A stretch of DNA of 64,000 nucleotides from Takakia lepidozioides (lineage: Eukaryota; Plantae; Bryophyta), in the NCBI GenBank assembly GCA_030704615.1, contig CM060732.1, positions 69,688,001 through 69,752,000 on the forward strand, written 5' to 3'. Position numbers and translations under genes: made by a program. Under the pieces are notes generated by a model. It had not been told where the DNA came from and ran no database searches. It worked only from the letters and a program-made list of their open reading frames with translations. Positions 12,514 to 61,839 of the stretch are shown here, one piece after another. Each line of letters starts with the position of its first letter. The stretch's first letter is position 1.

Positions 12514-15500
12514 CTAAGCATGCATTTCCTCCCCACGCTCCAAGGTTGATGTCCCCATCAACGCTTCTTCCGCTTTTGAGGTCGCCCTTTCGAAAGCTGC
12601 AACCGCCTCGGATGCGTTTTCCCATTTCTGAGGCACGCACCCAAGATGCCTCCACATGATGATAGCCCTTCCATTTGACGAGATACTCCGTTTCTCGGTT
12701 CCTAAACCTCCTCGACTTAAGTATTGCCTCCACCTCGTACTCAGGTTCATTTTCATGATCCAACAGCATAGGTGGTGGACGCAACACTTGATGCCGATTC
12801 GGACGCGCTTCATCTTTGAAGTAAGGCTTAAAAGGGATACATGGAATACTGGGTGCACCTTACTGTTTGCCGGCAGCTCCAATTCATACACATCCTCATT
12901 CATAACCTTCCGAATGCGAAAAGGTCCCGCATACGGAGTACGAACTTTGGACTCACTTCCAGAGGTAGTCGGAAATTCTTGATATTCAACCAGACCTCTG
13001 TGCCTGCCTCAAACTTCACTTCCCTCCGCTTCGCGTTCCATTCGCCTGCCTTTCATACCGTTTCCTAGCTTTGGCACCGTTCCTAGCTTTGGCAATATGT
13101 ACTTTGCGAGCTTCAACAAACGCTCGCGTTCTTCCAGTACCGCCGCTACTGCCGGTTCCTCAACGTCCTGGGCGGCCCAACTTGTCGGCACCAGAGGTGC
13201 TTTCCATAGACCAATACGAAAGGGGAAATTCCCGTTGCGGAGTGTTCTGTGTTATTATAACAGAACTCTGCCGCGTCTAAGTGTTCCACCCAGTCTGTTT
13301 GGTCTGCCGACACGTAATTCCGCAAGATCTGCTTCACTACGGAATTCACCCTTTCTGTTTGGCCGTCGGTCGTAGGTCGGAAGGCGGTGCTCATCTTCAG
13401 CCTCGTCCCCATCTTCTTCCAAAGTGCTCTCCAGAAATTTACTCGTAAACTTTGGATCGCGGTCCGAGACAATATCCTTCGGGACTCCATGATGCTTTAA
13501 GACGTGGGTGAAGTAAAGTCGCCCTGTCTCCTGCGCCGTTGCCGTCTCCTTGGTGGGGATGAAATGGCCCATTTTACTGAACCTATCCACCACCACCATG
13601 ATTGCATCGAATCCTTTTTGACAGCGGCATAGCAGTCATGAAATCCATCGAGACGCTTTCCCAAGTCCCCTCTGGAATTGGCAAGGGTTGTAACAGCCCC
13701 GCTTGCTTTTTGTACTCGCTCCGGTTTTGTTGGCATGTGGTGCATGTCTTGACATACTCCTCTGCCTCCTCCCTCAGTTTGGGCCAGAAATACTCTTTCT
13801 TCAAGAGTGCCGCAGTGCGCTTGGCTCCGCCGTGGCCCGCAAGCGGGCTATCATGGCATTCTCTCAAGAGGCTATCTCTGATCCCTCCCTTCGGCACGTA
13901 GAGACGTTTTTGCTTATACCGGAGCAGTCCATTTTGCAAGTGGAACTGCGATTTAACCCCCATCCTCAAGTCCTGCATCACGGACTTCGCCAGCTCATCC
14001 TTCGGCAAGCCTTCCGGATCTTCCTTTGGAGCGCCGTCTCGCCCTTGTACACCAACAGAGCTGCTGCTTTCTACTTAAAGCATCGGCCACCACGTTGTCT
14101 CGTCCCGGTTTGTACTGGATATCCACGTCGAACACCGCCAAAGTATCTTGCCACCTAAGTTGTTTGGGGACAACTTGGGCTGCGTGGCAAAATACTTCAC
14201 CGTGACATTGTCCGTGAACACCTTCACTGGGTTGGAACCAACATAGTGGCGCCAAAGCTCAAGACAGTGCACCACCGCCTTCATCTCTTTTTCGTGCGTC
14301 GGCCACCGTCGCTCCACTTCATTCAGTTTCTTACTTTCGTAAGCCACTGGACGTCCATCTTGCATCAGTACACCCCCAATCGCGAAGTCCGACGCATCTG
14401 TGTATCTCGAACGGACGATCGAACTCCGGGATTTTCAAGACTGGAGCTTCCGCCATCCGCTGCTTCAATTCAGCAAAAGCTTGGCCACAAAAGGTGTTCC
14501 ATGCCAGACTTTAGATTTACACAGAAGGTCTGACAGCGGCCCCCGCGATCTTGGCGAAATTTCTCACATACTTCCGGTAATAGGAGGCGAGTCCTAGGAA
14601 GGATCGCACTCCCGGGACCGAAGTCGGAGGCTCCCAGTCCAAGATCGCCCTCACCTTTCTGTCATCCATTTTGATCCCATCCTGTGTAATCACATGCCCC
14701 AGGAACTCCACTTTGTGACCCCGAATTCGCACTTTGAAGCTTTGGCATACAGCTTCCCTTCTCGCAATTTTTGGAACACCCTTTTTGGTGCTCCAGGTGT
14801 TCTCCTTTGTTTTCGAGTACACCAAGATGTCGTCGATGTACACGATCACAAAGTCATCCAACCACTCCTGGAAAAGGCTGTTCATCAGCGTGCTAAATGT
14901 CGCTGGTGCATTGGTGAGCCCAAAAGGCATCACCAAGAACTCATATGAACCATACCTTGTCCTGCACGCGGTCTTCTCCTCATCTCCTTCCGCCACGAAT
15001 TTGATGATAGCCGGAGCGCAAGTCGATCCGGCTGAAATACTTCGCTCCTGCCAACCGATCGAAGAGGTCGTCGATCCTTGGCAAAGGGTACCGGTTTTTG
15101 ATAGTCACCTTATTCAGAGCCCTGTAATCGACACACATCCGCAGCGTCCCATCCTTCTTGTCTGCAAATAGCACCGGGGCTCCGTAAGGTGACTTACTCG
15201 GCCGGATGTACCCCTTTGACATTAGATCCTTGAGCTGAGTCTTCAGCTCGACCAACTCTCTGTGGCTCAACCGGTAGGGCGCCTTGGCAGGCGGTTCCGA
15301 TCCCGGTATCACCTCAATCTTGTGGTCAACTCCTCTTCGCGGTGGCAAGCCGCTTGGTAAATCCTCCGGCATCACATCCTGGTATTTCTCCAAAATCCCC
15401 TTGATCCAATCTGGGCTCGGCTCCCATCGCCTTCTCCTTTCACTTCTCTAATGTAAAGCAAAAATTGGGGCTCGTGTGCCTCCTCCACGGCCCACTCCTT

Positions 15501-17000
15501 TGCTGACAGAAGGTTTATTCGCCCTCCCACGGATTTGGGCGTTTCCGACACTCGTAAAACCTCGCCACCATTCCCACATGGCAGCGTGACTACTCTCTTG
15601 CGGCCATCTATGACCGCTCCGGATTTGCTCAAAAAGGTCATCCCCAAAATGAGATCCACTCCATCGATCTCGCAGATGGTGAAGTTCTCACGTCCCTCCC
15701 AACTCCCCAGTTGAAGAGGAACATCAAACGCCAACCTTGTCGCCAACTGTGGTTCTCCTTTGGCAGAACGCACCTCAATAGAGGCCCCCACGTCACTTGT
15801 CGGGAGTCCCAACTTTCGCGCCGCCGCCGGCGTCATGAAGGAGTGCGACGCTCCTGTGTCCACCAACAACGACACGTTAGTTCCGGATATTATCCATCCA
15901 CGAACAATAACTGACTCCCTTTACGCAGAGCGCCAGTTTCCTGATACAACTCACAAGAATAGTTGCCTACCTTGCAAGTCCTGGCGACCACCGCTTCCAC
16001 CAAGCGACTGATGGTATCTTCCGACAGCTCCGTGGTTGCCCGAGTCATGTTCAATTGTCGAGGTTTTGTGCACTTCTTGGCCATGTGCCCGGGCTCCCCG
16101 CAATTGAAACACACTCCATCAAAGGTCGCCTTCTGTCCGCCATAAGCCGCTCCACCCGCTTTTCCTTTCGAAGCACCGGGTGTCGCCTTGACGTGTGAAG
16201 GCCCTCCCTTCGATTTCCACGTGCCATTGTCGCCGCGTGGCCTATCCCACTTCTTTTCCGGTCGGAGGAGTCACCTTCCCGCCGGGTCTTCTTGTGGTTC
16301 AGCTCCGTACGGCCTTGTCTCTCACCCCTAGGGACATCCGAGAAACATTCAGCCCTCTCAATTGCCTCGTTCAAAGTCTTGGGTGGCTTCTCCTCCAACT
16401 TCCGCCTGGCCCATGGGGCCAGTCCCGCCACAAAGTTGAAGACCATTTCTGGTTCTGCCATGTCCGCGACTTCGAGCAACAGCACATTGAAAGCCTGGAC
16501 ATACCCCCGAATGTCATCTGTTTGCTTCAAATTCCTCATCTTGTCCCGGGCAAGCCAGGACGCGTTGAGGGGCACAAATTGTCTCTTCATCAATTCCTTG
16601 AACCCCCCTCCAAAAAGGCGTTTCTTGGTTGAGTGAAGCCACTTCCACCCGATCCTCGCCACTTAACTGGCCGCCCGGAAGTACTGCTCTAGCTCCAGGA
16701 GCCAGGTGTTGAGTGCCTTCCGATTTCGGACGCCCTCGAAGGTGCCGGGTTCCTTAGGCTTCACCTTAAACTTTGCCTTAGTGGAAGTGGCATTAGCCGC
16801 CTTCAACACGTCTTTCAACGTCCCGCCAAACTGCGCCAACAACCCTTCCCAAAAGGCTGCCGGCATGGGAGGCATCCGTTGGTCAGTCGGAGCTCTCACG
16901 GATTCCTCGGGCCCCGGCTCCTCGGATTCCTCCCGCTCTTGAGCGGCCTCGCTTTCAGAAACCTGCGTCGCTTCCTCAAACGGCCGCTTCGGTGACACGT
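12514..17000 (-). CDS. gag-pol polyprotein of the nested chromovirus (frameshifted in this assembly)
   Basis: Zn knuckle [14 protein letters not shown], protease [21 protein letters not shown] / YIDDILVYS, RNase H AYESKKL..HEKEM, integrase H..GH..C..C / SDRD / [17 protein letters not shown], chromodomain [20 protein letters not shown]. Confidence 0.92.
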
Positions 17001-17114
17001 CGCCCCCATCGGACTCACCAGGATCATCATCTTTTGGGCCGTTTCGCTTTCGCTTTGGCTTGCCCGACCCCGTGATGAGGCCAACCCCAAGGACGATCGC
17101 GTACTGAACTCTAA

Positions 17115-17126
17115 GCTCTGATACCA
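17115..17126 (-). promoter_or_regulatory. Primer-binding site (tRNA-iMet) of the nested element
   Basis: Perfect TGGTATCAGAGC on the - strand, 2 nt from the LTR. Confidence 0.95.
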
Positions 17127-17128
17127 AG

Positions 17129-17857
17129 TGTCGCGCACCTCACTTCGATAAGCTCCCCTTCAAGTCATAGTTACTCGCTTTGATGCACGCGCCTAACTCC
17201 CAACCTGGCCGCCCGGGCCAACTTGGAGCTTCGGCTGCTCACCGGACATAACGGTCCCCCTTCGCTTCCCACTAAACCCTCCACCTATTTGGGACTAGGA
17301 GAATTCCCTTTGGTAGATGACAGTCCGGAACAGCTCCCCACTCTTTGGTCGCTTTCCGGCTCGCTCGCTTACTCACTAGTTTTTGGTCACCAACGGGCTT
17401 GCACCGTTCTCGGGGTCACTACTCCCCTTATATATACTTCTGTAGCTGTCCGCGGGGGTTTCACAACCAGCCATGCCATTTTATGGCGAACCACCACGAA
17501 AACCCTCGACTCCCGGTGATGAGTCGCGGTGAGTTTTGGCCCACTCACTACGGCCCCTATGGACCGTGATGAGTCCCAAGACTCCCCACGACTCCCACCA
17601 CGAGGTCTCCGCCCCCATGGTGAGTCCTATGCCACCCCCACTAAGTCTCGCTAAGCTACCACCACCCCTTGTGGAGCCACCCCCACCGCAACCCGGTGTG
17701 CGGGGCTCCACCTAGTGAGCGCCTCCGCCTCCTTGGGTGCCTTGGGGCACTCAAGGGTGCTTCAGCCCCCCATACCTATCGCTGCCGCTGCCCCCACCAC
17801 AGGGGCAACCCCTCATGTGTCCCGACCCCCTTGCCCTCAAGGCAAAGGGCCGCGACA
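17129..17857 (-). repeat. 5' LTR of the nested chromovirus (729 bp)
   Basis: Direct repeat of 10932-11656; followed on the - strand by the PBS. Confidence 0.97.
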
Positions 17858-18670
17858 GAAGTCGTGCAATGGGAGTGCTAGAATGATGGATTTATCGAAT
17901 GGAAGTACATTTGTAATATTTTCCCACGTCAAGTGATTTGGAGCACGGAATGTTCATACGATCTTTTCTACTCGACAATGCTTCAACATGGTTACAAACA
18001 TGGGGGAGAAGACAGCTTGCAAAAGGAGAATTTTTACTATGGAGCACCTTGAAAGCGAGACTGCTCCAACAATTCAAGGCAGTAGATGTTGTTACAACTG
18101 CTCGAATGAAATTATGAAACTTAGAACAACACGGGAGTGTGCAAAATTACATTGAAGATTTTTTGAATCTTCAGGTCCAAATCGAAGACATGAGTCCTGT
18201 AGAAGCTTTAGACAACTTCAAAAGAGGATTGAAGAAGAAAATTCAAGGAGAGGTAATTTTACGCAACCTGGTTGATGTCCACGATGCAATTTCAATGGCC
18301 CAAAAGATTGAAGGGACGCTACCAAAATACGACGAAGGTATACACGTTCCATTGAACCAATACGGACCAACGCTTATGGAGCTTGGAAATCTTCGAAGAC
18401 GGGATAACTTCCAATACTCTCAAAGAAATAGGCTGGGAATTAGATATGGGGAAGATAACACACAGCGGCGAATGAAATTGAATGACAAGGATGTGACCTC
18501 CTCAACATTCTCACGAACAGAAGGACAAAAGGAAACTCGACAATATTACAACTGTGGAAATACAGACATCTTACAGCCAACTGCCGAAGTGGAAGGTACA
18601 ATCGACAAACTTATCGAAAACCTCTTAACAGTTTAAGGAGATGAGAAGATAACAAACATCACAATGAGCA

Positions 18671-18716
18671 GGAAAATGAGGACAACCAGTAAGTAGACCT
18701 CGTGGTCTTACTGGTT
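18671..18716 (+). promoter_or_regulatory. Putative -1 ribosomal frameshift signal at the gag-pol junction
   Basis: GGAAAAT (probably ancestral GGAAAAC), 6-nt spacer, then hairpin AACCAGTAA..GACC-TCGT-GGTC-TTACTGGTT. gag ends QENEDNQ*, and the -1 frame runs to the protease motif. Confidence 0.65.
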
Positions 18717-20475
18717 CTACAAAGAAGAGGAGAGGCGAGGGGCCTTACAAGGAGAAGAGACAAATCAATCATGCGGGCAAGAAAGAGACGCAGTTAATTG
18801 TGGCAGATGAAACCTTGGAAGGTATTCATGTGAAAGTGTTAATAGACCCTGGGGCAAAAAAAAACTGCCTTGAAACTAGGACTCCCCTTAGAAAAGGATG
18901 AAATAGATGAAGTAGAAATTCCAAATGGACATGCAGAGGCCATTGAGACACTACCTAAAAACATAGAGTTGTCGATTGGTAAATATAGAGAAACCTTAGA
19001 ATGGCGAGTGGTCAGACTGACTCGATATGACGTAATATTAGGCATGCCTTGGATGGAATCTCACAACCCTGATGTTGATTGGCGTAGAAAGATAGTCAAA
19101 ACCCAGAATTGGAAAATATGGGGAGATGGAGTGAAGACACTATATCGAAACCTACCATCATTTGTTATAGGTACTACAGCTATATGTAAGAAAGACTTAT
19201 TATTTGTAGGTTTAATAAGAGACGTGGAAAATCCGAAAAACCCCGCCAAAGAGAAGAGTAGATCATAAGATTGAGGTTGTTCCAAGTAGTACTCCTTCTT
19301 GTAAAGTCCCTTATCGATTAGCACCAAACGAGTTGGAAGAATGTAAGGCTCAAATCGAGGACCTACTATCAAAAGGCTTTATAAGACCAAGTGTATCCCT
19401 GTATGGAGCGCCGGTGTTGTTTGTGAAGAAAAAAGATGGAGCAATGCGCATGTGCATTGATTATCGAGCACTCAACCAGCAGACAGTGAATAACAAGTAC
19501 CCGTTACCACGCATGGACGATCTATTTGACCAACTGCGATGAACAAAATACTTTACGAAGCTTGATCTAAGGAGTGGATACAACCAAATTCGAGTTGCTG
19601 ATGAAGATGTATATAAGACCGCTTTCCGCACTAGGTATGGACATTTTGAATACATGGTTATGCCATTTGGTCTCACCAATGCCCCAGCCACATTCATGGG
19701 CCTCATGAATGATATCTTTCGCCCATTCTTAGATAGATTTGTGATAGTCTTTTTAGATGATATTCTGATCTATAGTAACAGCCTTGTCGAGCATAGAAAC
19801 CACCTCAAACAAGTATTACAAGTTCTCCATGAGAATCAGCTATATGCCAAAGCATCTAAATGTGAGTTTGAAAAATAAGAAGTAGATTATCTTGGGCATC
19901 GTGTGAGTAGGAAGGGAATTGAGGTAATGAGTGAGAAAATAGAAGCTATTCAGCAGTGGATAGCCCCTGAAGACTTACCCAATTAAGGAGTTTTCGTGGC
20001 CTTACCGGATTCTACAGACGATTTGTACGGGCATTCTCAAAGATTGCCCAACCATTGACAAATCTTTTGGGCAAAGGAATTAAATGGAAGTGGGGTAAAG
20101 AAGAGGAGTTAGCATTTCAGGCCTTGAAGGATGCGTTGCTTCATGCCCCGATCTTGAAATGGTATGATCCAACAAGATTAATCAAGCTCTCGGTAGATGC
20201 GTCAGGCTCAGCAGTGGGTGGGGTATTACAACAAGAATGGGAAAACGGATGGCACCCAGTTGCATATTTTTCTCGCAAATTGTTACCTGCGGAACAAAAC
20301 TACCATACAACCGAACGAGAAGAATTGGCCATTGTTTTGGGTACAAAACACTATCTTGGAGACAAAGAGTTCATAGTGGAGACAGACCATAAACCGTTGT
20401 TGTACTTGGAGACACAAAAAGATTTATCGAAAAGACAGATTCGTTGGGCGGAGTGGCGACAACAATTTAATATGA

Positions 20476-21150
20476 TGTCATGGTTTTAGTCATGGTTATC
20501 TAGAATTACCTACTTCTAGTTAACTAAGACATTTTAGATATTTATATTTATATTTTGTGTGTTGGGAACTCATTTGGTCTCACATGCCAAGTGAGGTGTC
20601 GAGCATCACTTGAGACATGGAGATAGGTTTTCCCCTTGTGAGTGTTGAGGAGGCTCATCTTCTTGTAGTTGAGCCTCCATGAGCTTCTCTCACCTCCATA
20701 GCTCTAGGTATTGAGAATGAGTGTGTTGAGGGCTTTCTAGGGTGGATTCCATTAGCAAAGGTGCCCTTGGCTTGACTTAGTTTATGTGATAGAGTGGATT
20801 TCACTTGGAAGGACTAGGGCTTGTTCTTCATGTGATTGCTTCATGCTTTGAGAGCTTTCATTGTCTTCTACTTCTCTCATTTCTCATCTCTTATCACCAC
20901 AAGAAGATCACCTTATGCTTGTGAGTGCGGAGTGTAAGGATTAGTTTTGCACTTGTATTTTAAAGAGGTTGAGAGCTAGGAGAATTTAGCTCTTGTATCA
21001 CAAGGCTTGCAAGGGGTTGCAAGGAAAGGTGCTCGAGTATTGCATGCACCAAGGAGTTGGAGAGCTTGAGAAGAAAGCTCTTGAGTCACAAGATTTTGCA
21101 AGGATTGTAAGGAGGAAGTCTTGTGTGTGTGGAAGCATGGATTCTAGGGT
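20476..21150 (+). mobile_element. LTR-like fragment of a third family (starts TGTCATGG) that truncates the old element's pol
   Basis: Abrupt junction after RWAEWRQQFN; TG start; a diverged second copy begins at the same base at 36186. Right boundary approximate. Confidence 0.6.
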
Positions 21151-27420: not shown

Positions 27421-28312
27421 TTAATAGCCTCCTTTGAGATCATTGACGACATCATAGGGAATCGGAGTCACAGTCTCGAGTGTGGATGCATCCAGAACAA
27501 ACCCACCCTTGGGGCCTTGTGGCTGCCGTTTAGTAACAACGGTTTCCCCACGAGCCTTGGCCTCAGCCTTCAGCTTGTCGTTACTCTTTCGACGTTCAAT
27601 AAACTCCTCTCGGCAGCGGGACGGCTGGACATGCTCAACGCGCACATGGATGCGCTTCCGAATAATCCTGGGGCCAACCTGGAATTCAGAGTACCGACAA
27701 AACTCAGAAGCAGTCTGACCACAAAATTGTACTGTACTCAGAAACTGGAAAACCAACAGGAATCTGTGGATTGCATTTGAGACAACAATATGTGCTCATG
27801 ATTGCTTCAGGGCAAATCTAGAAAAAACAGATGACAGACATTGGACGACTTGTGCTGCTCATACTGCAACATTTTGCTTCACAGTCACACAACCTAACTC
27901 TAGGTATTGGGAGCTTAACACCCTGAGAAGACTGTTTCTTATTCTCGCACACTGGTCAGACGTTCACTTTAGCTCCTTCTCTTTCCGATGTCCTCACAAA
28001 AGCTTTTGAACGTTACAACAGAGAGCATATCATGCACATAACTTCCACAGACACCATCCATATACAAGAACCCACCTGCTTGTTAACAACTACACCAACA
28101 GCCCGCTTGGTGACATTCCAGACGATACCAGTGCGGCCATGGTAGAACTTGTGGGGCATGCCCTTGTGCACAGCGCCATTCACCTTGATGTCCACATAAT
28201 CTCCAATCCTGTAGTTTCTCAGATATGTGGTCAAGTGAATGTACCCCTTCTGTCTGAATGGCCGCGAGAACAGATCCCTGGTACGCGATCGCAATCCATG
28301 ACCTGCCGGCAT
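27421..28312 (-). CDS. RPL21: 60S ribosomal protein L21 (eL21), 164 aa
   Basis: Exons 28312-28076 and 27678-27421: [62 protein letters not shown]. Probable 5'-UTR intron ~28340-28427. Confidence 0.98.
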
Positions 28313-29342
28313 GGCTCCTGCCCTCCTCTCTCAAAGTCACTGCTCCGAGAAAGGAAAAGGAACTCGTTCGTCATGCAATTAGGGCACAATACCCTCTCTC
28401 ATGTCCCGATACAGAGGGACTCTTAACCTGGTTATGGCGCATTGACTTCCGAACAATAGAATCCTCATTCCGGCATTTGAAATCTGCATCCCAGAATATC
28501 TAGTCCCGGTGCACGAGCTTACAAGCCACGTTTAGAGATGTTTGAGACTTCCTTTGCTGGCAGCTGTGTGAGAAGATGGATCCTCTTCTTAAAAAATATT
28601 GTTCTGTTGATAGATACTGGGGAGGAAATGCAGGTGGATGCATGTTGTTTCCAAGTACATGTTCAACTTCTCTGCAAGGGTTTCTGCAGATCCTGACAGT
28701 GGTGATGCTTCCATGAATGCTTGTCTTATGCATGGCAAGCTAGATTGGTCTCTTGATGCTCAATGGAAAATTACTACATCCTCCAGGAAGAGGTAGGCAC
28801 TCTCGCCTCCTTCTGAGCCTAACAAAATGTAGAGATCATTTTGGGGTGACAAGTCATTATCATCATGTTGCAGTAGTAAGTCATCTCTGGGTGGAAAAGC
28901 TTGTTAGATTGGTTCCTCTGCATAACCTGCAACTGGGAACTGGCTAGAAGAAAGTTTTCCATAGGATTGTGTTGTGGTAGCCCTGTGCTAAGTAAGGTGT
29001 CTGTGACCAAGATGATACTGTTATCTGATTCACCCTAGAGACTTGAAGCCCCCTAGGTATGTGAATTGCTGCAAACGGCCCAATCCATAGCTGTGCAATG
29101 TGAACTCCAACATAGGCTTTCCACAGCAGAAAACTCATGTATGGTCTCCCACCTAGATACTCTAGCCGTACTCAGATGGAGAACTGTTTTCTAATGTACA
29201 AAATAGCAACTAATTTCTTCATGATGGACAATGAATGAGTAAAAAATCTCCAATTTTTTGTTCCGTTTATCCTCTTCTCCTTGAATGAGTCAAATAGCTG
29301 CAGATTAAATGGTTGGTGACTACCATCTGCGCTGGAATCAAC

Positions 29343-32300: not shown

Positions 32301-32904
32301 TCAAATTGAACTTCAGCTAGTACAGGCACACAAGTGCACAGCGATCATTACCAGAAACCATACATGACTGCCCTTACACCGTCGAGTCCACTTCTACACT
32401 GATAGATTAACCTGCAACTCAAACCAAGTGACAATTGACAGGCGAGAAGACCACGTACGGGCACCACGACTTGGAGTACACGACAACTGGACTGGCTGCA
32501 TTCTTCGCCCTAATCAGATCATCTAGGGATTCATCCCCTCCAGCCATGCTCCTTGCCGCACACACTCCTATAGTTGCACCCTGCCTGGCATCAGAACCCT
32601 GGCAGCTTGCGAACCCTAAACCTAAACGAGCCGGCAGCCGGCTCCCTGAAGAATAGGACAATGATGAGGAAAGAGAGTAAAGAATTGAAGGTGCCAATGC
32701 CGAATTCCTGGAGGCTCGATGTGCAAGGGGCCAAAAACAAGCCGATCCGAAGACAGGGAGATGCAGAGGGCTGTACTTTAATTTTTGGCTGAATGAAACA
32801 CCATCAAGAGAGTAAGACGCACAGAGGATGGCAGAAGACGGTGACGCCATAGGTTTGCTGGAAGCTCCCGATATGCCCAATCCACTGCCCAATGCGGGCG
32901 CCAT
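29343..32904 (-). CDS. Class I glutaredoxin, plastid GrxC5/S12-like, active site WCPYC, ~234 aa
   Basis: Exons 32904-32459, 30836-30763, 30635-30564, 29764-29738, 29428-29343, phases consistent: [65 protein letters not shown]; Ser/Ala-rich N-terminal extension. Confidence 0.93.
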
Positions 32905-33334
32905 ATCCCACAACCACACGAAACCCAATTGCAGAAGAAGTCGAGGATTGGGATATGCAAAGAAGATAATCACCCACAGCAAGATGGCTCTGGCCGAGCC
33001 AGGCTCCGCACCACCGAGAGAGTCCTCTCTGTTGTTATCGTGCAGGGGGCTGAGGTGCGAGACAAGCCAAAAGCAGTCCAGGTTCGTCGCACACTGAAAC
33101 GCAACGGGGTATTACCTCCAGGGAGGCTATAAAATCAAAATCCTTGAAAATATATACGTTCTGAAAGATACTACCTCTGTATAGGTAATTTTAATGCATT
33201 CGTTGTATGTAGGCATTGACCCCAAGACCTTGCGAAACAACCTATCGTGCAGTTAAGAATGACATTCATTCAGGGCTTATAATCTCTCACTATATATTCA
33301 CTCATTTCTATATAAGCCGAGCAACCCACGCCAG

Positions 33335-37147: not shown

Positions 37148-40100
37148 GAGGTTAGGTAGCGCGTGAGCATGCTCACGTGAGCACAAGGGCATATTCCCCG
37201 AATTTCCATGAAATTTCCGCGAAATGTCCACAACGAAACGGAATTGGCGAAACTAATAATTTTTTGAAACTAACACATAAAGAACAAGTAGCCCCTATAC
37301 CTGATGAACATGTTACCCTATAAGCGTTGTTTTTTCTCACGTTGTGCTCACACGATATTAGGTCCTTTTCATAACAGACATGAGAGTGGGCAGTGATGTC
37401 TAGCCTTAAATTTAAGATCATCATCCATGGATAATTTCGCACGGCGAAACTTTGTACCAACCAGCCTGAGAAGAAACCACACTGTAGCTGAAATGATAAA
37501 TATGTCACTTTTAAAGGCCCTACCCATGTATATTTTTGTAGAGCGAAACTCTCTCCCTTTACAACAAGTACAATTACATATTGAGATATGTATTTGCAGT
37601 GCGAAACGCTGATCTCTGAAGAGAAGTTGGGTAACGTGCAGTTAAGATGCTCACAAACATGAAAAAATATGAATTTTTTTTTTGAGATGCCCAAAGAAAA
37701 TCGCACCTGGTTTTAAACGAATACACTGTCAGACAAAAGTTTCGTGTTGAAAAACTCTTTTGTCACGACAAAGCAGTTCAAATCCCTCAATTAATATCTC
37801 TCAATATTGGTTCAACAACATGCAAGTTTTTGAACAAGAACAATGTCAGACATGAGTTTCTTACTGAAAAACTCTTTTGTTACAGGAAAACAGTTCAATT
37901 CCCTCAATTCATGTCCCTCCATATTGTCTCAAAGCATACTGGTTAACAAATACACTGTGAGACAAGAGTTCCGTGTTGAGATACTCTTTTGTTACGGCCA
38001 AGCAGTTCAAATCCCTCAGTTCATATCCCTCCAAAAATATTTTCAGACAAGAGTTTGTGTTGAGGAAATGATGCAGATTTTTGAACAAAACCCTTGCCAG
38101 ACAAAAGTTTTGTGTTGAGAAACTCTTTTGTCACGACAAAGAATTTCAAATCCCTCAGTCCATACCCCTCCATATTTGTTCGAAAGGATGTAGGTTTTTG
38201 AACAAATACATTGTCAAAGAAGATTTTCATGTTCAGAAACTCTTTTGTTATGACAAAACAATTCAAATCTCTCAATCTCTGTCCTTCCATATTGGTTCAA
38301 AAGCATGTAGGTTTTTGAACAAAAACACTGTCACAAAAAAATTTCGTGTTGAAAAACTCTTTTGTATGGCGAAACAATTCAAATCTCTCAGTCCATTCCC
38401 CTCGATATTAGTTCAAAGGCATGCAAATTTTTGAACAAAAACACTGTCACAGAAGAGTTTCGTGTTGAGAAACTATTTTGTTATGGCGAAACAATTCAAA
38501 TCTCTCAGTCCACGTCCCTCCGATATTGGTTCGAAAGCATGCAGGTTTTTGAACAAAAACATTGTCCAAGAAGAGTTTCGTGTTGAGAAATTCTTTTGTT
38601 TTGGCGAAACAATTTAAATCTCTCAATTCACGTCCCTCCATATTGGTTCAAAAGCATGCAGGTTATTGGACAAAAACACTGTCCGAGAAGAGTTTCGTGT
38701 TGAGAAACTCTTTTGTTATGGCGAAACAATTCAAATCTCTCAGTCCACGTCCCTCCAATATTGGTTAAAAAACATGCAGGTTTTTGAACAAAAATACTGT
38801 CTGAAAAGAGTTTCGTGTTCAGAAACTCTTTTGTTTTGGCTAAGAAATTTAAATCTCTCAGTCCACGTCTCTCCATATTGGTTCAAAAGCATGCAGGTTT
38901 TTAAAGAAAAACATTGTCTGAGAAGAGTTTCGTGTTGAGAAATTCTTTTATTATGGCTAAGCAATTTAAATCTCTCAGTCCACGTCCCTCCACATTGGTT
39001 CAAAACATGTAGGTTTTTGAACAAAAACACTGTCAGAGAAGAGTTTCGTGTTGAGAAACTCGAATTTCGGAACAAAAACACTATCAGACAAGAGTTTCGT
39101 GTTAAAAAACTCTTTTGTTATGGCGAAGCAATTCAAATCCATCAGTTCATGTCCCTCCATATTGGTTCAAAAGCATGCAGGTTTATGTTGAGAAACTCTT
39201 TTGTTATGGCGAAATAATTGAAATCTCTCAATGCATGTCCCTCCATATTGGTTCAAAAGCATGCAGGTTTATGTTGAGAAACTCTTTTGTTATGGCGAAA
39301 TAATTGAAATCTCTCAATGCATGTCCCTCCATATTGGTTCAAAACATGCAGGTGTTTGAACAAAAAAACTGTCAGAGAAGAGTTTCGTGTTGAGAATCTC
39401 TTTATGCAGGTGAATAAGTTTACATCACTCAGTTCATATCCCTCCATATTGGTTAAAAAACATGCAGTCTTTTGTGCATGCTTTTGAACCAAAACAATGT
39501 TAGACGAGAGTTTCGTGTTGAGAGACTCTTTTGTCAAGGCGAAAGAGTTCAAATCCCTCAGTTAGTATCTCTCCTTATTGTTCCAAATGCATGTAGGTTT
39601 TTGAACAAAAAACACTGTTAGAGAAAAGTTTCGTGTTGAGAAACTCTTTTGCTACGCCAAACTAGCAATTCATATCACGGAGTTTATATCCGTACATATT
39701 GGTTCTAAAGCATGCAAATTCTTAAACCATTACACTGTCAGACAAGAGTTTCGTGTTGAGAAACTCTATTTTTATGACAAATGAGTTCAAATCCCTCAGT
39801 TCGTATCTATCCATATTGTTTTAAAAGTATGCAGGTTTTGGTACACAACCATAGTCGGATAAGAGTTTCATGTTGAGAAACTCTTTTGTTACGACGAAGT
39901 ATTTCAAATCTTTTAGTTCATATCCGTCCATATTTGTTCAAATGCATGTAGTGCTTTGAATAAATTTACTGATAGATAAGAGTTTCGTGTTGAGAAACCT
40001 TTTTCAATCTTTGAATTCATTACTAAAAATTGTTGACATTAATGTTATCAAAGCGAAACAATCTCAGACCTTCTCAGATTTTGTGATAAAATTCACGGCA

Positions 40101-40698: not shown

Positions 40699-42582
40699 CT
40701 CCCCCCTCTACCCCCCATAGTGAGCCTCCTTACGGCCACCTCCTCCCCTTGGCCCTTGTTGCCGGCCTCACGGACCTGGTATGAGTATTAGTACCCTAAA
40801 CCTAATACCAGACTGGTCTGGTGTCGGTATGGGCTTGGGTACTGGCCAACCGTAGACCAGGCTGGTCTGTTATCAATACCAGTACTGATACTAAATACCA
40901 GGCATCAGACCACTATCAACACTGGTCTGAACTGCGAACCCTAATCTGTGGCAGCTGAATCTGCTACCTTTTTGCAGATCAGAGCTTGTGCGAAGACATT
41001 AATGAGAGTAGTAATGGCGACGCAGAGCTCATCAATGCCATTACCCAGTGCCTTCACTGCAAGCAATCAATGCCTTCCTCCCGCTCCAACAATCTGCTTG
41101 TTTTATTAACAAAATGAGTTAGATCTTTGTTGCTCTGCCATTACTACCGAGAACACTTTGAAGGCGCTGAGTCAGTACCAAATGTGTCATAAATGCTCCA
41201 TCTCCGTAGTTTGATGAGGTGGGGAGAGCAGGGGCGCGAGACCGAAGTTATGCTGAGCATGTGCTATTGCTATCATCACGCATGTTTGCTGAGGGTTTGA
41301 ATTTTGAAACCCCAAAAGATCTGCGATCTTGTGCGAGTTGATTGAAAGATCTAGTGTTTACTAAAGAGGTGTCCATGTTTCGAATTTCGAGTTTCGACCT
41401 ACTTCGTCTACCGACGTCGGCCAGAAATGGCCAAACCAGTTGTGCCGGTATGATGGAGCTCGACTGATCACACGCTGCTGAAGTTGCCCTGCGGCAGGAC
41501 ACACGAGGTCTAACTCACGCCCGATATGGGTCATGTCAAGTACAGAAAAACTCGCCACTCTCGACGCAGACCTCCGCACATAGTATGGTACGTTTCCAAC
41601 AATCCAGCAACACCACCGTCAATTTAGCAGCTTTAAATAGGCCACCTACTACCTTGGCAGCTGAACAATATCGCGAGGACGCTCTGGAAGTCGGAGGCAA
41701 GACTGAAAGCCTTTGGACAAAAAATAGGTAGGAATCTCCAATGTGTCAGGATTACACCAAGCGAGGACAAGAGCGCGTAGAACACGTATTTCTCGAAGCC
41801 AATGTTTCTTGTCAGATCTGTAGCCGGGGAAATAATCAGAGGATGAAGAATTTCCTGCGGAGTGGAGTGGCTCTCCCGACAAATTGTTCGATTGAGGAGA
41901 GAGCAAGACACGATGGGAGAGGAAACACACAGAACTAACAGAAGAAAAACCACAACGGTCAGAAGTGCATCCTTGAACATCCACAAACGATGAACAACAA
42001 ATGGCATATATCTAGTGAGGTTTCAGTACACTGAAGAGAAGAAAAATTTCACCTGAATGAATAGCAAATCAATCAGATGCGGAGCTGATAGTTGCTCCCT
42101 TGAACAAGCAGCATAACATAGAGTGGTCCAGTGAGCTCTATCACCCATCTGTGATCCCAACCTTGCGCTGTATATATACCTGCTACTAAGTGACTGAAGT
42201 ATGTACTCACCACTTACCCAGACAGCCTCATATTTGTACCACACCCCTTACGAAGGTGAAGGAAGACTTCTATAACTTCCTACCAAATCAAGGATCATCA
42301 CATGTGATGAGGTGGGATAAACAAGCAAGTTTTGGACCGACCTGTGTTGCCTTCAGAAATTACTTGATTCCCTGAAACTTTAATAGCCAAACTTCTTTAT
42401 ACGCTCTGCAATTTGCAATCTGTTCTCGGCAGTCTAGCAATCCCCACTTATACAGTGTTTCCCGTCTAGTGAAGTCCGACAACCACTCGCTACCCCTCAC
42501 CTACCCTCTCTAGCTGTTCTTCCCTTTCAAGAATTTAAACAAGTGACTGATGAACCAGATGGTGTGAAGGGGCCCAGGCAAA

Positions 42583-45500
42583 TCATGGCAGATTTAGCCT
42601 GCAGTCGATACAAGTTCCAGAATTGTCTGCTGTAAACCCTTCACTACAGCTGCAGCCATATCCGACAGGTGCTGAAGGGTCTGATTGACAAATGGCATTC
42701 GAATCCCCATGTGCTCTGCAAGTGTCTGATACACCACAACCCATCGACGAACATCTTGAAGGAGAACAAATAAATGGAAGCTTGATATCACAAGCAAGAT
42801 CGTTAAGCATGTAGTCTAGAGATTTTATGGGTTTTCCTGAGATGAAAGACTTGTACTTTACAGTGGTGCAACCCTCTTTCCCATACAGGTTATTGGGCTC
42901 TGCGAAGTTCCAAAATGACTCCTGGAAGGAAATGCACGGTGACAACGGCCAGCTCCATGCAGAACTCGGTGGCAAGACAGCATGAGGTTTTCTCCCTCCT
43001 AGGTAGCAGCCTTGGCCTTTGGGGCTGTAGGAATCCAGGAAACCTTGGCCAAGAGGTGTCAGTTTGCACAGATCACCTACATCCTGCAGCTCATCAAGAC
43101 TTGCAACAGCTGCCAAATGCCCACCATGCTGCCGGCAATACAACTCGGCCTCGTCCCATGTATGACTCTCCTCAACTAGCATGAAGCAAGATTGTGAGGC
43201 TACACCAGCAGTGTATCCTGTTGGGCATTCTGAGGCTCGCGGGACCCATTGCACCGGGCTTGAAGGTGGAGGTGGACAAGAACTAACAGAGGGAGGGGAT
43301 GATGGCACTGTAGGCAAGGAAGGAGATGAATACGTGTAGGGTGGTGGAGAGGGAAGTGGGGGGACTGGGGCAGGAACGTATGGAGGGGGAGACTGAGGAG
43401 GGCTTGGAGGTGGGGAAGATAATTGAGGAGGTGGAGGGGAGGGAGGTGGAGGAGAGTACTGAGGAGGGGGAGGGATGTACACCTGTGGTGAAGGATGGGA
43501 GGGTGGGGAGGACCATTGATAGGGCGGCGGTGGTGAATATTGAGGTTGAGGTTGGGAAGGAATGGGGGGAGAGCTGGAAGGCAGGGGAGATGAAGGTGGA
43601 AGGGAAATGGAAGGCGATGAACCGGATTGTGGAGGGGAAGGGGAGGAAGGATCCGTAGGCGGGGGAGGGTCGCCACATTCCTGCGGCGGCTTCTGGTTGG
43701 GGACACCTGGTATGCAGTTGCCATTGTCATTGAAGATGGGGATCTTCAGACAAGTGGGGCTGACCCCTGTGAAGAAGTTGTTGGAGATGGTTACATTCAT
43801 CAAGTGGGGCAAATTGCAGAGATTTGCGGTCACATCGCCAGTGAGCTGGTTATCCCCCACATCGAAAACAATCAGACTGGAGGCGTCTGACAGGCTGTAG
43901 GGCAACATGCCACTAAGTCCATTGAAGCTCACATCGAACACTGTCACCAGGTTCAGTAGGCCAATCTGCTCAGGAAGTGGACCAGCGATAGAGTTGTTCA
44001 GGAAAAGAACCTCATTCAAAGAACGTGACATGCTTCCTACACTGGTGGGGATTCCACCTGTCAGATAATTGTTTGCCACCACCACCACTGAGACAGGCGA
44101 ATTTCCAAAGTTCTCAGGCAAGGGAGAGTCAAATGCATTATTGTTGACGAACAAAGCATCCAGACTTTTGTCGAAGAGTTCCGGTGGAAGGGGTCCCCCG
44201 AAATTATTGAAGCGGATGTCGAGGTAGATGAGTTGAGGGATTTCCAAGACCACTTCCGGGAACGGACCTGAGAAACGGTTGTTGCTCAAATCAAGCTCAA
44301 ACAAGATCTCCCAATTCTCAAATGTTCCTGGGATCGTCCCTGAGAATCGATTGGTGTTGATATGGAAAATCCCGAGTTCGTATATCCACCCCAATTCTTC
44401 TACTAAAGTGCCTTCCAAGTCTGCATGGTTCAAATCAATACCCGCAACCACTAGTACACTGGATGTGCTATCATTCAAAGGTGGCGAACAAAACACTCCC
44501 TTGTACTGACACACATCGTATCCCACCCATGTCGCTGTGATACCAAGAGGATCATCTGTAATGGCCCCTTTCCATGCTTGGAGAGCAACATACGCACGAG
44601 CTTGGCTTGTATCCAGGCCATACTGATGACCGATTCCGTGTGGGTGATGGTTGAACCCCTCGGAATAGTAATCCTTGCCAAGGAGGTGGCGGTCCACCCA
44701 GGGAGGATCCGGGATCCCATCTCCCGAACCAGCAGCTGGTCGTGTTTCCGACGCCTGCCCTCCTGTACGCAAACAAGGTATATGAGCGAACCACAATCAA
44801 GGTAATTAGGAATCGTTTGATCAATGTCCGTGCTCGCCTTGAATCGACAGTCACCAGACACTGTGAAGTTTCAGCTATGCCGACTGCAGGTTCATGGAAA
44901 ACAATCAACACTACTTGTTGTTTCCCAAACTAGTGGAAACTTCAAAACAACAATCTGCTGATCTCGCTCTGTGTATGTGGTCCCCCTGGACGCTAGATTT
45001 GTTCATCACTCTGCCGTGCAGACGGCGCATTGAGCTCTTCTATAAATCGATATCTAGAGGTCGAGAAGGTTGACGGGACGTCCAACAATATTCAAGATAT
45101 GCCTGGCCACAGGTGAAAACTGTTGTGCGACCTTTGAAGTGGACAGACAGGCCTTAGTCGGTTAAGAGGAAGAACTTCAATGTCACACTGGACGTTCACA
45201 CATCTACACGTGAGTAGTTTACTTATCAACTCAAGCCGACCTTACTGAACTCTATTTAATGGAAGCATAAATTTCCTCATTGCTGTAGATGGCGGCGGTC
45301 ACAGGTTATGGGTACGGCCCTGCTCAGGAAGAATACCTCATGGTATCTGGACGTTCGGAAAATCGGCAGAATACATTGGCAAACCCAGACAACGAGAGCG
45401 CAGTGAAGACGCGTGTTCTCTCTAATTCCTAACTAATCTACGCCAACGCAAAGATGTGAAGTCGCTTTCTCTGATAGATAGCGTGACACCTGGACACAAA

Positions 45501-45673
45501 TTGAAAGAGAGTGGGATCTCAGAGAGGAGACAGAGAGAACCTGCAGCCATACCTGAGACTTGCGACAGAAGAAGAGAGATGCATATCAGGACGAGTAACA
45601 AAAAGCTCCCGAGCATGCCCTTCCGTTGCTGCTGCAAGATTAAGGCCGCTGGGCCTACATCAACCTGTGCCAT
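42583..45673 (-). CDS. Secreted LRR-extensin (LRX-like) fused to a C-type lectin domain and an EGF-like module, ~766 aa
   Basis: Exon 1 45673-45553 (hydrophobic signal MLGSFLLLVLICISLLLSQVSG, phase 1) splices in frame to exon 2 44762-42583. LRX cap AYVALQAWK..W.G.DVC.YKGVFC, VAGIDLNHA, plant LRRs, NCIP..QKPPQEC; SP3-4/Tyr extensin; CTLD ~43227-42766; EGF ~42752-42600. Confidence 0.93.
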
Positions 45674-47384
45674 GCACCGGCCTTTCTCCCTAGTCCCTGA
45701 GACAGGTCCACGTCCCCCTCACCTGTCCTCTCTCATCTCCTTCCCTGTACACTGACCTCCCTCTTGTATCTCCTTTCCTGTTAGAACCCTGACAAATCAA
45801 CCCAAGCTGAACATTCAATAACAAAACAGCAAGTGGGCCGATCCGATAATTAATGGGTTGATACCAAATGAACATCAGGGGCCGCTACTGTTAAGTTTGA
45901 TCACACAGACGAGTGCCATCGACAAGAAACAATCTAAGGATCATCCACGTCAAGTTAGCATGAAACTGGATTCCTGCTTCACAATGCATACTGAGAATGG
46001 AGAAGGCTACTGTAATAGACAAGGTTTTCCATCGTTGAATCATGATGCACTGCAGTAGTTCATCCCTAGGTCTTGGTATCTATCAATGGCCTCCTCCTCA
46101 ACCAAGTATGCAAAAAAAAAAAACCAGGAACTTGTGCACATTGCTCTGTTGTGCCATGCAAATGCAGCCTGCAGACAACTCCGCAGGGAAGAAATACAAT
46201 GTCCAACAAATCCAAGGGTGCAGTATTAAACCTAACATGACAGCCAAAACGCAACAAGCTCTTAATAATTTGACCATCCATCGGTGCAGTCCACAGCCTA
46301 ATCCCTGACTAGTAGATGCCAGCTCAGGTCCATCCCTCCCACATCTGCACTGCTCAAGGGGGACCGCCAACAATGTGTGCCAAACGTCCGTCTCTACATA
46401 AAGGATATTGACCTCAAAATGCTTGCACCTCTTGTTCATGCGCCGCTGCCATATGAAGCTGAAATGCTTGCACTGAACAAGCGGTAATAAAACTCTGACC
46501 TTGAGTGGAAAACCGTTGGGCACTACTTACCCAAAAACCAAAGCCGCTGCAAAGCAAGCATCATATACAACTCTTTCTCTCCCTCGCTCTCTTTCTCGCT
46601 CGTGCTTCTCACGCAATGAATGGGTGGAGAAGAAAACAAATCTTGGAAACTTCAGATCTTGAGAGGACAGTGCTGCCTTGGCCGCCGGGGTGGCAGACGC
46701 ATAACTTGGTGCATTAATTTTCCCACTAAATTTGAACTGCATTAATAAAGGCAACTTGGGCAGTCAAATGTGGCCTGTCACCACCAACCGTGACATGCGT
46801 GCCACCTCTCCTGTTTCCCATCAATCTCCAATCTCCCTCTGAACCTAGATCTCTCTGGACAGATTGGTCATTAGACATGTCTTCCAAGTTCGAGAGTCTT
46901 ACAAACTACAAAGAGGGATGTTAATCCCTTAAGGAGTAGGTACATGGTGGGTTGTTGGGTACGCTGCAGCCGCAATAACTGGCTGATGATTCTGTTCCGT
47001 TCTGCAGCCAAAATAGAGTAGAATAATCTGCAGCACAGTCTGCAAACATGGGACGGTGAGACTTGGGGAATAGATAGCAATCACGCATCGATGAACCGGA
47101 TAGGCATTGAATTCAATTTTGTTCGAGTATATACAATGCTGGTCCCACCCCAAAGGCCATGATGAAAAGTGAACGCGGGGTGTGGCAATTAATTCCGTTG
47201 ACGGTTGAGTAACTAGTAAAAAGGCAAGTTGAATGTAGTGAGTTCTCCTCGCTGACCGGCGAAGGCGGTGTACTGGCTCTGGCACCGGCAGTGGCCGGTG
47301 GCCGATATTAGTGGGTGCCCCATTATTTGTCCTGTCACTCATCTTGTGTGCTAGTACAGTCTGATGAAGGGAAGGCAGTTTAAC

Positions 47385-48513: not shown

Positions 48514-61362
<12,849 letters not shown>

Positions 61363-61839
61363 GACCGGGGCAGCTCTCGTACAATAGAGCTGGACGAAGC
61401 TGTATCTGCCTGCAAAATACCTGCACTAGCCTAAAACATGCCCAAGCATACGGAAGAAAGGGGAACAATCATTACCGAGGAACTACCTCTTCCCAATAAC
61501 TCCATCCTCCATTCCCGCTGAAGACGACCTCAAGGATGTGAGGAATTGCTCATTCACACAAAAGCTTATCGCAATTTTCTTCTGATCCTCTTTGCAATCA
61601 GTAGCCTACCAGCTTTCAAACTGCAACTCACACTTGTCTCCAGCAATTGATCAACTCCATGTTCATAGATTTGTCAAGCTCGTTTGCAGCACCTCCACGA
61701 TCCCCTCCTCTTCCTCCCCACAGCAATATCTCCGTTCCAGGTAGGATATCGCTATCGCTGTTCTCATCATTCATCCAGTCAGCTATTCTTTCATTCATCC
61801 TGAAGCTTATCTATCCATCCGTCTCTTAGGGCTCCACCA

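Follow-up and report, generated by a model that had tools for sequence, protein, structure and literature searches.

A Lectin-Bearing LRR-Extensin Gene in the Moss Takakia lepidozioides with a Predicted RALF-Binding Pocket and a Predicted Ca2+/Mannose-Type Site

Results

Gene structure and transcription

The gene described here lies on the minus strand of the window (the whole 64-kb stretch of Takakia lepidozioides DNA that was analyzed) and encodes an LRR-extensin (LRX) protein of 766 aa, that is, 766 codons plus stop, from two coding exons (Table 1). Coding exon 1 (45673-45553, 121 nt) runs from the ATG at 45673 to a GT donor, and coding exon 2 (44762-42583, 2180 nt) is an open reading frame down to a TGA. 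Other genes in the window, all on the minus strand, are those for ribosomal protein L21e (27424-28330) and for a multi-exon DEAD-box helicase (~49700-61400) with an RS-rich N-terminus and a Helicase_C match, PRP28-like by inspection, as well as the first exon of a probable plastid glutaredoxin (32419-32982), which encodes a transit-peptide-like region ending in WCPY and, as an exon alone, has no Pfam match. Broken pieces of Ty3/gypsy retrotransposons (RVT_1, RT RNase H) occur on both strands at ~13700-20500, and a tandem array with a 117-bp unit, ~16 copies and a 235-bp higher-order period is found ~2.5 kb downstream of the gene (37716-40003).

Table 1. Features of the Takakia LRX gene, in the order of transcription (positions within the window).
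Feature	Position	Strand	Basis or remark
5' untranslated exon	46232..46500, extends beyond 46500	(-)	spliced contig, run X1; several upstream ATGs
5' UTR intron, GT..AG, 443 nt	45789..46231	(-)	joint in run X1; ends read in sequence
Exon with start codon 45673 and probable signal-peptide hydrophobic core	45553..45788	(-)	alternative Met at codon 20
Phase-1 intron, GT..AG, 790 nt	44763..45552	(-)	splice-site reading and contig joint
RHLL (RxLL-type) motif	44680..44691	(-)	sequence comparison
LRX-type LRR domain with N- and C-caps	43675..44607	(-)	Pfam, PDB matches, residue alignment
Extensin-like region, 147 aa, 7 Tyr, 3 SPPPP, one YTY	43231..43671	(-)	sequence
Long-form C-type lectin domain	42766..43227	(-)	Pfam, conservation, model
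EPNN; Glu; Asn-Asp	42889-42900; 42874-42876; 42799-42804	(-)	within C-type lectin domain
EGF-like module, six cysteines in EGF spacing and one linker cysteine	42610..42753	(-)	
Short tail with one extra cysteine, and stop codon	42583..42609	(-)	relatives likewise end few residues past EGF
3' UTR	42345..42582	(-)	run X1 contig; further contig reaches 42128

A single contig of public run X1 covers 42792-44761, 45552-45787, and 46231-46500. Both GT-AG introns are missing from it, showing that it derives from spliced RNA, and it includes without interruption the LRR, the extensin, and the lectin as far as the Asn-Asp motif. A second contig of this run (42345-42812), unspliced and of similar depth, continues through the EGF module, the stop codon, and the 3' UTR; the two overlap by only 21 bases. 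Given these contigs, the LRR-extensin-lectin fusion is real and transcribed. A preceding reading of the letters alone (the sequence-only reading) had held that the fusion is not a splicing-model artefact and had asked for reads across the junction between the extensin and the C-type lectin domain (CTLD); the single open exon and the spliced contig that spans this junction bear it out. Alternative splice sites were considered and rejected, as only the donor at 45552 and the acceptor at 44762 fit, and the contig uses the same pair.

The 5' untranslated exon (46232-46620) contains ~ten upstream ATGs, and near 46530 there is a strong GT donor that looks unused. These may point to uORF control or to alternative splicing of the UTR.

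N-terminus and membrane topology

All sequence searches were made exon by exon, not with the joined protein. Exon 1 encodes a hydrophobic core at residues 21-36 (mean hydropathy 2.9) behind two candidate start codons, and an N-terminal signal peptide is likely. In exon 2, no 19-residue window rises above a hydropathy of 1.35, so that by this measure the protein is without a TM segment, as first proposed. The RHLL site that had been noted from the letters is present; similar motifs occur in the LRXs of lycophytes, ferns, and Ginkgo and are absent from Ceratodon/Physcomitrium-type proteins. Cleavage at this site is a guess.

Marchantia (L004:8001-10832) and moss LRXs have in common an N-terminal His/Pro/Gly repeat of the GxGHHPPG type ahead of the LRR, which we found in none of the vascular-plant N-termini inspected. 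The Takakia protein differs from the Physcomitrella proteins in keeping only one degenerate copy. The repeat is possibly a metal- or pectin-binding segment.

The LRR domain keeps a predicted RALF pocket and lacks the dimer cysteine

Pfam identified LRRNT_2 and LRRs in exon 2, and the best PDB matches of the LRR are Arabidopsis LRX8 and LRX2 (E ~1e-100), far above other LRR proteins. The initial proposal of an LRX-type LRR with Cys caps, an extensin, and a C-type lectin within one 2180-nt exon is thus supported by Pfam, the PDB matches, and the open frame. In LRX8, F109 and H150 are required for RALF4 binding, F221, E266, E313, and Q314 are minor contacts, and the dimer face is formed by Y87, A133, and C157 (Moussu et al., 2020, PMC7132299). 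The equivalents of F109, H150, F221, and E266 are kept in the Takakia protein and its moss relatives (F109 is Tyr in one of them). At E313/Q314 the Takakia protein has Ile/Val, whereas other mosses keep E313. By these residues, the predicted RALF-binding pocket is retained.

The dimer face differs. Positions Y87/A133/C157 are T/E/S in the Takakia protein; in other mosses they are, respectively, T/V/S, K, and non-Cys. The LRR region has only six cysteines, including those of the N- and C-caps; missing are the dimer cysteine and the Cys-rich ladder by which the tail is joined to LRRs 7-11 in Arabidopsis LRX2 and LRX8, which corrects the first description of the LRR as complete. It is unlikely that the protein forms a covalent dimer. 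Roughly half of the seed-plant LRXs sampled also lack C157, and its absence is therefore not tied to the lectin. Overall, the protein has in common with LRX2 and LRX8/PEX1 (PDB 6qxp, 6qwn) the capped LRR core, the four RALF-pocket residues, and an extensin that follows the LRR; it departs from them in the absent C157 disulfide, the altered dimer face, the missing tail ladder, the changed E313/Q314, and the lectin-EGF module beyond the extensin.

A tyrosine-bearing extensin that is not the C-terminal domain

In LRXs of the angiosperm type the extensin is the C-terminal domain, whereas here the lectin and the EGF module come after it, an arrangement shared with Physcomitrella proteins that are still classed as LRXs in the literature. 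The region had been estimated at ~140 aa and is 147 aa long; its expected SPPPP and YTY motifs were found, together with six SPPP. Physcomitrella LRXs were reported to have shorter extensins without cross-linking tyrosines (MacAlister et al., 2016, PMC4738400), and we see such short, Tyr-poor extensins again in the sequences analyzed here. The extensin tyrosines number 15-17 in the metagenome loci L008/L009, 7 in the Takakia protein, and 0-2 in the Physcomitrium proteins. Because the Takakia protein and L008/L009 carry both tyrosines and a lectin, a mere substitution for the tyrosines does not explain how the lectin arose.

Two cysteines, one in the C-terminal tail (42586-42609) and one at the end of the extensin (about 43270), are absent from the Ceratodon and Physcomitrium relatives. 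They could form a bond between themselves or connect one molecule to another.

The C-type lectin domain and EGF-like module

The C-type lectin is confirmed by its profile: Lectin_C scores 27.8 bits in the whole of exon 2 and 32.3 bits with the domain alone, against a cut-off of 22.6. For the EGF-like module, which had also been named from the letters, EGF-type Pfam models (cEGF, Pvs28) stay below the cut-off, and the assignment rests on the spacing of six cysteines, their conservation, and a Foldseek search in which the first match is the lectin+EGF fragment of E-selectin. Folding the lectin from seven moss rows alone gave a poor model (pLDDT 53), and an alignment that included animal lectins gave one with a pLDDT of 88. 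This model has the C-type lectin fold with its core disulfides (codakine: Z 17.6, rmsd 2.1 over 126 residues) and also matches the mannose-type lectins langerin, mannose receptor CRD4, and DC-SIGN.

In C-type lectins, an EPN/ND site predicts that one Ca2+ is bound and that sugars ending in mannose, glucose, GlcNAc, or fucose are preferred. The EPN-N and the next Glu of the Takakia domain align with those of mannose receptor CRD4. The five primary Ca2+/sugar ligands (E, N, E, N, D) do not vary among 19 sequences, and EPN, Glu, and Asn-Asp are also found in L008/L010. Overall, 10/25 of the D/E/N/Q columns are invariant, giving a chance of ~0.005 that all five named columns would be so if columns are treated as independent. 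Going by these residues, the domain is predicted to have an intact Ca2+/mannose-type site of the animal kind. Such a site predicts the class of sugar but does not identify the ligand in nature, and proteins are the targets of some EPN domains.

Animal mannose-type lectins and selectins (codakine, langerin, mannose receptor CRD4, DC-SIGN, and E-selectin) share the fold and the EPN and xND ligands with the Takakia domain, and in E-selectin, as here, the EGF module directly follows the lectin. On the other hand, the plant domain is only 20-29% identical to the animal lectins, has two long inserts (near the site) and extra cysteines that add disulfides, carries Leu or Phe in place of the Trp of WND, and forms the C-terminus of a wall protein. 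Within plants, C-type lectin domains of extracellular proteins are found in receptor kinases of the At1g52310 type, two of which occur in mosses; these have a TM segment and a kinase and no EGF (PMC5007699), whereas the Takakia protein has neither TM segment nor kinase. No kinase of this type was recognized among the best 150 matches of the profile search, in which one match was kinase-like (2017 aa), so any kinship to the Takakia lectin is distant. The ESM Atlas returned only generic animal and bacterial lectin clusters.

Relatives and distribution

The sequence-only reading took the architecture to be undescribed. It is not: in a discussion remark and a supplementary figure, four of the five Physcomitrella LRXs are reported to end in a C-type lectin domain (MacAlister et al., 2016, PMC4738400). 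We recovered four lectin-bearing Physcomitrium genes (XP_024370173.1, XP_024373216.1, XP_024383063.1, XP_024391105.1), and the same domain order was found in two Ceratodon proteins and in the metagenome loci L008-L010. The Physcomitrella proteins resemble the Takakia protein further in LRR identity (~55%), in Ca2+ ligands and cysteines, and in ending just after the EGF; they differ in their shorter extensins (0-2 Tyr, against 7 Tyr and a YTY) and in the RHLL motif, present in Takakia. Neither the EGF module nor any function is mentioned in the accessible part of the 2016 paper. Our literature search, with most subscription papers beyond reach, returned no functional study of moss lectin-LRXs and nothing relevant for MpLRX/PpLRX. 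The architecture is thus described, though not functionally characterized, and the Takakia gene is a new member of a known, functionally unstudied moss LRX subfamily and not a new kind of protein.

The lectin-EGF region is 52-54% identical to Ceratodon and Physcomitrium counterparts over ~95% of its length (E 1e-62 to 1e-69), with a range of 48-54% for the four Physcomitrium proteins, and lectin identity across mosses is ~50-62%. Closer relatives came from the metagenome scan: L008-L010, whose JGI identifiers may denote peat-moss samples, show 61-62% identity in lectin-EGF and ~64% in the LRR (L008, L010), and have long, Tyr-rich extensins. When 1.84 billion representatives were searched with a profile, the strong matches were only three clusters, of which the named one is Physcomitrium, and one fragment; the other matches were weak and mostly multi-domain lectins. 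LRXs were also sampled from Marchantia, Diphasiastrum, ferns, gymnosperms, and angiosperms, and the lectin-EGF module was found in none of these. A six-frame profile search of L001, L002, and L004 downstream of the Marchantia and Diphasiastrum LRX genes likewise revealed no hidden lectin. The Marchantia gene contains an assembly gap of ~1 kb inside its extensin, and since a Pro-rich tail follows the gap, a lectin hidden there is unlikely.

Most moss members of the family have no precomputed Lectin_C match in the protein database, because their scores lie near or below the cut-off; this may explain why the subfamily is overlooked. One annotated Ceratodon allele (P0065, M758_1G050100) is without the lectin because the frame apparently shifts beyond the extensin; this reflects either a mistake in annotation or assembly or a truncation that is natural.

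Age of the fusion

Takakia lepidozioides is sister to all other mosses (PMC13120521), so the presence of a lectin-LRX in this species would make the fusion no younger than the base of the mosses. LRR trees place the Takakia protein among LRXs, in the bryophyte group (100/99), as the deepest branch; L008/L010 follow, and then Marchantia with the other mosses. In the free LRR tree, the lectin-less Marchantia sequence is nested, on a long branch, among lectin-bearing LRXs, and a single clade of lectin-bearing LRXs is not rejected (p-AU 0.054). The simplest reading of these sequences is one fusion event in the moss ancestor. An earlier fusion followed by loss in Marchantia would be a less simple alternative.

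Discussion

LRX-RALF-pectin complexes occur in pollen tubes and root hairs. The explanation that we judge best, and toward which we lean with modest confidence, is that the Takakia protein binds RALF in the wall and has a second tether, to glycans, that depends on Ca2+. As in Arabidopsis LRXs, the protein would be secreted, and its extensin would be hydroxyproline-arabinosylated and lie in the wall; the LRR would bind a RALF peptide in contact with pectin, leading to CrRLK1L/FERONIA wall-integrity signaling. By analogy with animal C-type lectins, the C-terminal domain would bind a single Ca2+ and use it to hold terminal mannose, glucose, GlcNAc, or fucose-type sugars, the most plausible carriers being the moss's own wall polymers, such as mannans, or glycoproteins. 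Mannans are abundant in moss walls and make up ~7% of that of Physcomitrella. The lectin would then serve as a second, reversible anchor, capped by an EGF module made rigid by disulfide bonds, and the LRX would probably assemble non-covalently. The loss of tyrosines from the extensins of derived mosses fits a lectin that takes over anchoring. Since the protein has no TM segment and no kinase, any signaling must go through a partner. The idea of a wall-anchored, two-headed protein, first suggested from the letters, is supported in that the key RALF-pocket residues and the five Ca2+/sugar ligands are both kept.

The lectin could instead recognize microbial glycans such as fungal or oomycete mannans or chitin ends, making the protein a soluble pattern-recognition molecule that links pathogen contact at the wall to RALF/CrRLK1L signaling. 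We consider this unlikely, even though animal lectins that have EPN sites and recognize pathogens are among the solved folds nearest to it. The moss lectin evolves slowly and occurs in few copies, unlike most immune receptors, which diversify, and LRX function elsewhere is structural and growth-related; still, RALF knockouts in Physcomitrium do change pathogen resistance (PMC9933782).

A similarly low probability attaches to the idea that lectin and EGF together form a Ca2+-stabilized domain for protein interaction or self-association, replacing the missing LRR dimer interface and binding no sugar in vivo. LRX8 needs dimerization to work, its dimer residues are changed in the Takakia protein and in other mosses, and the inserts near the site and the extra disulfides would suit such a role; however, invariance of all five primary-site ligands is more in keeping with sugar binding than with a function that is structural only, and many lectin-less LRXs are also without C157. 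Finally, it is very improbable that the assembly is wrong here or that the model, for want of later exons, shows just the extracellular portion of a longer receptor kinase: the contig through the stop is unspliced and its overlap short, but all domains share one open exon, the spliced contig crosses the extensin-lectin junction, and all relatives stop a few residues past the EGF. The longer kinase was rejected on the stop codon in the contig, the like ends of the relatives, and the lack of any kinase-like frame, by inspection, up to the next genes.

Returning to the Ca2+-dependent tether, it bears on a question that is open in the field, namely by what means LRX proteins stay attached to the wall and what it is that they sense. 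To our knowledge, no plant C-type lectin domain has a demonstrated sugar ligand. New here, beyond the domain order, are the EGF module, the invariant residues of a predicted animal-type Ca2+/mannose site (EPN, E, ND), the predicted RALF pocket, the lack of the LRX dimer cysteine and cysteine ladder, and an extensin that keeps tyrosines. Physcomitrium offers a direct test bed, with easy gene targeting, four genes with the invariant EPN site, and three RALF peptides with knockouts, and the Takakia copy, as an early-branching, tyrosine-bearing form, helps to order the evolutionary steps. On a wider view, which we put forward tentatively and with more doubt than conviction, mosses would have had, since their earliest split, a C-type lectin whose animal-type Ca2+/mannose site works and which is coupled to a RALF-binding LRX scaffold, so that wall-integrity sensing would respond directly to one particular glycan; the non-dimeric form with a lectin would perhaps be the ancestral moss (or moss-liverwort) LRX design, and the tyrosines would have been lost later, in Ceratodon and Physcomitrium.
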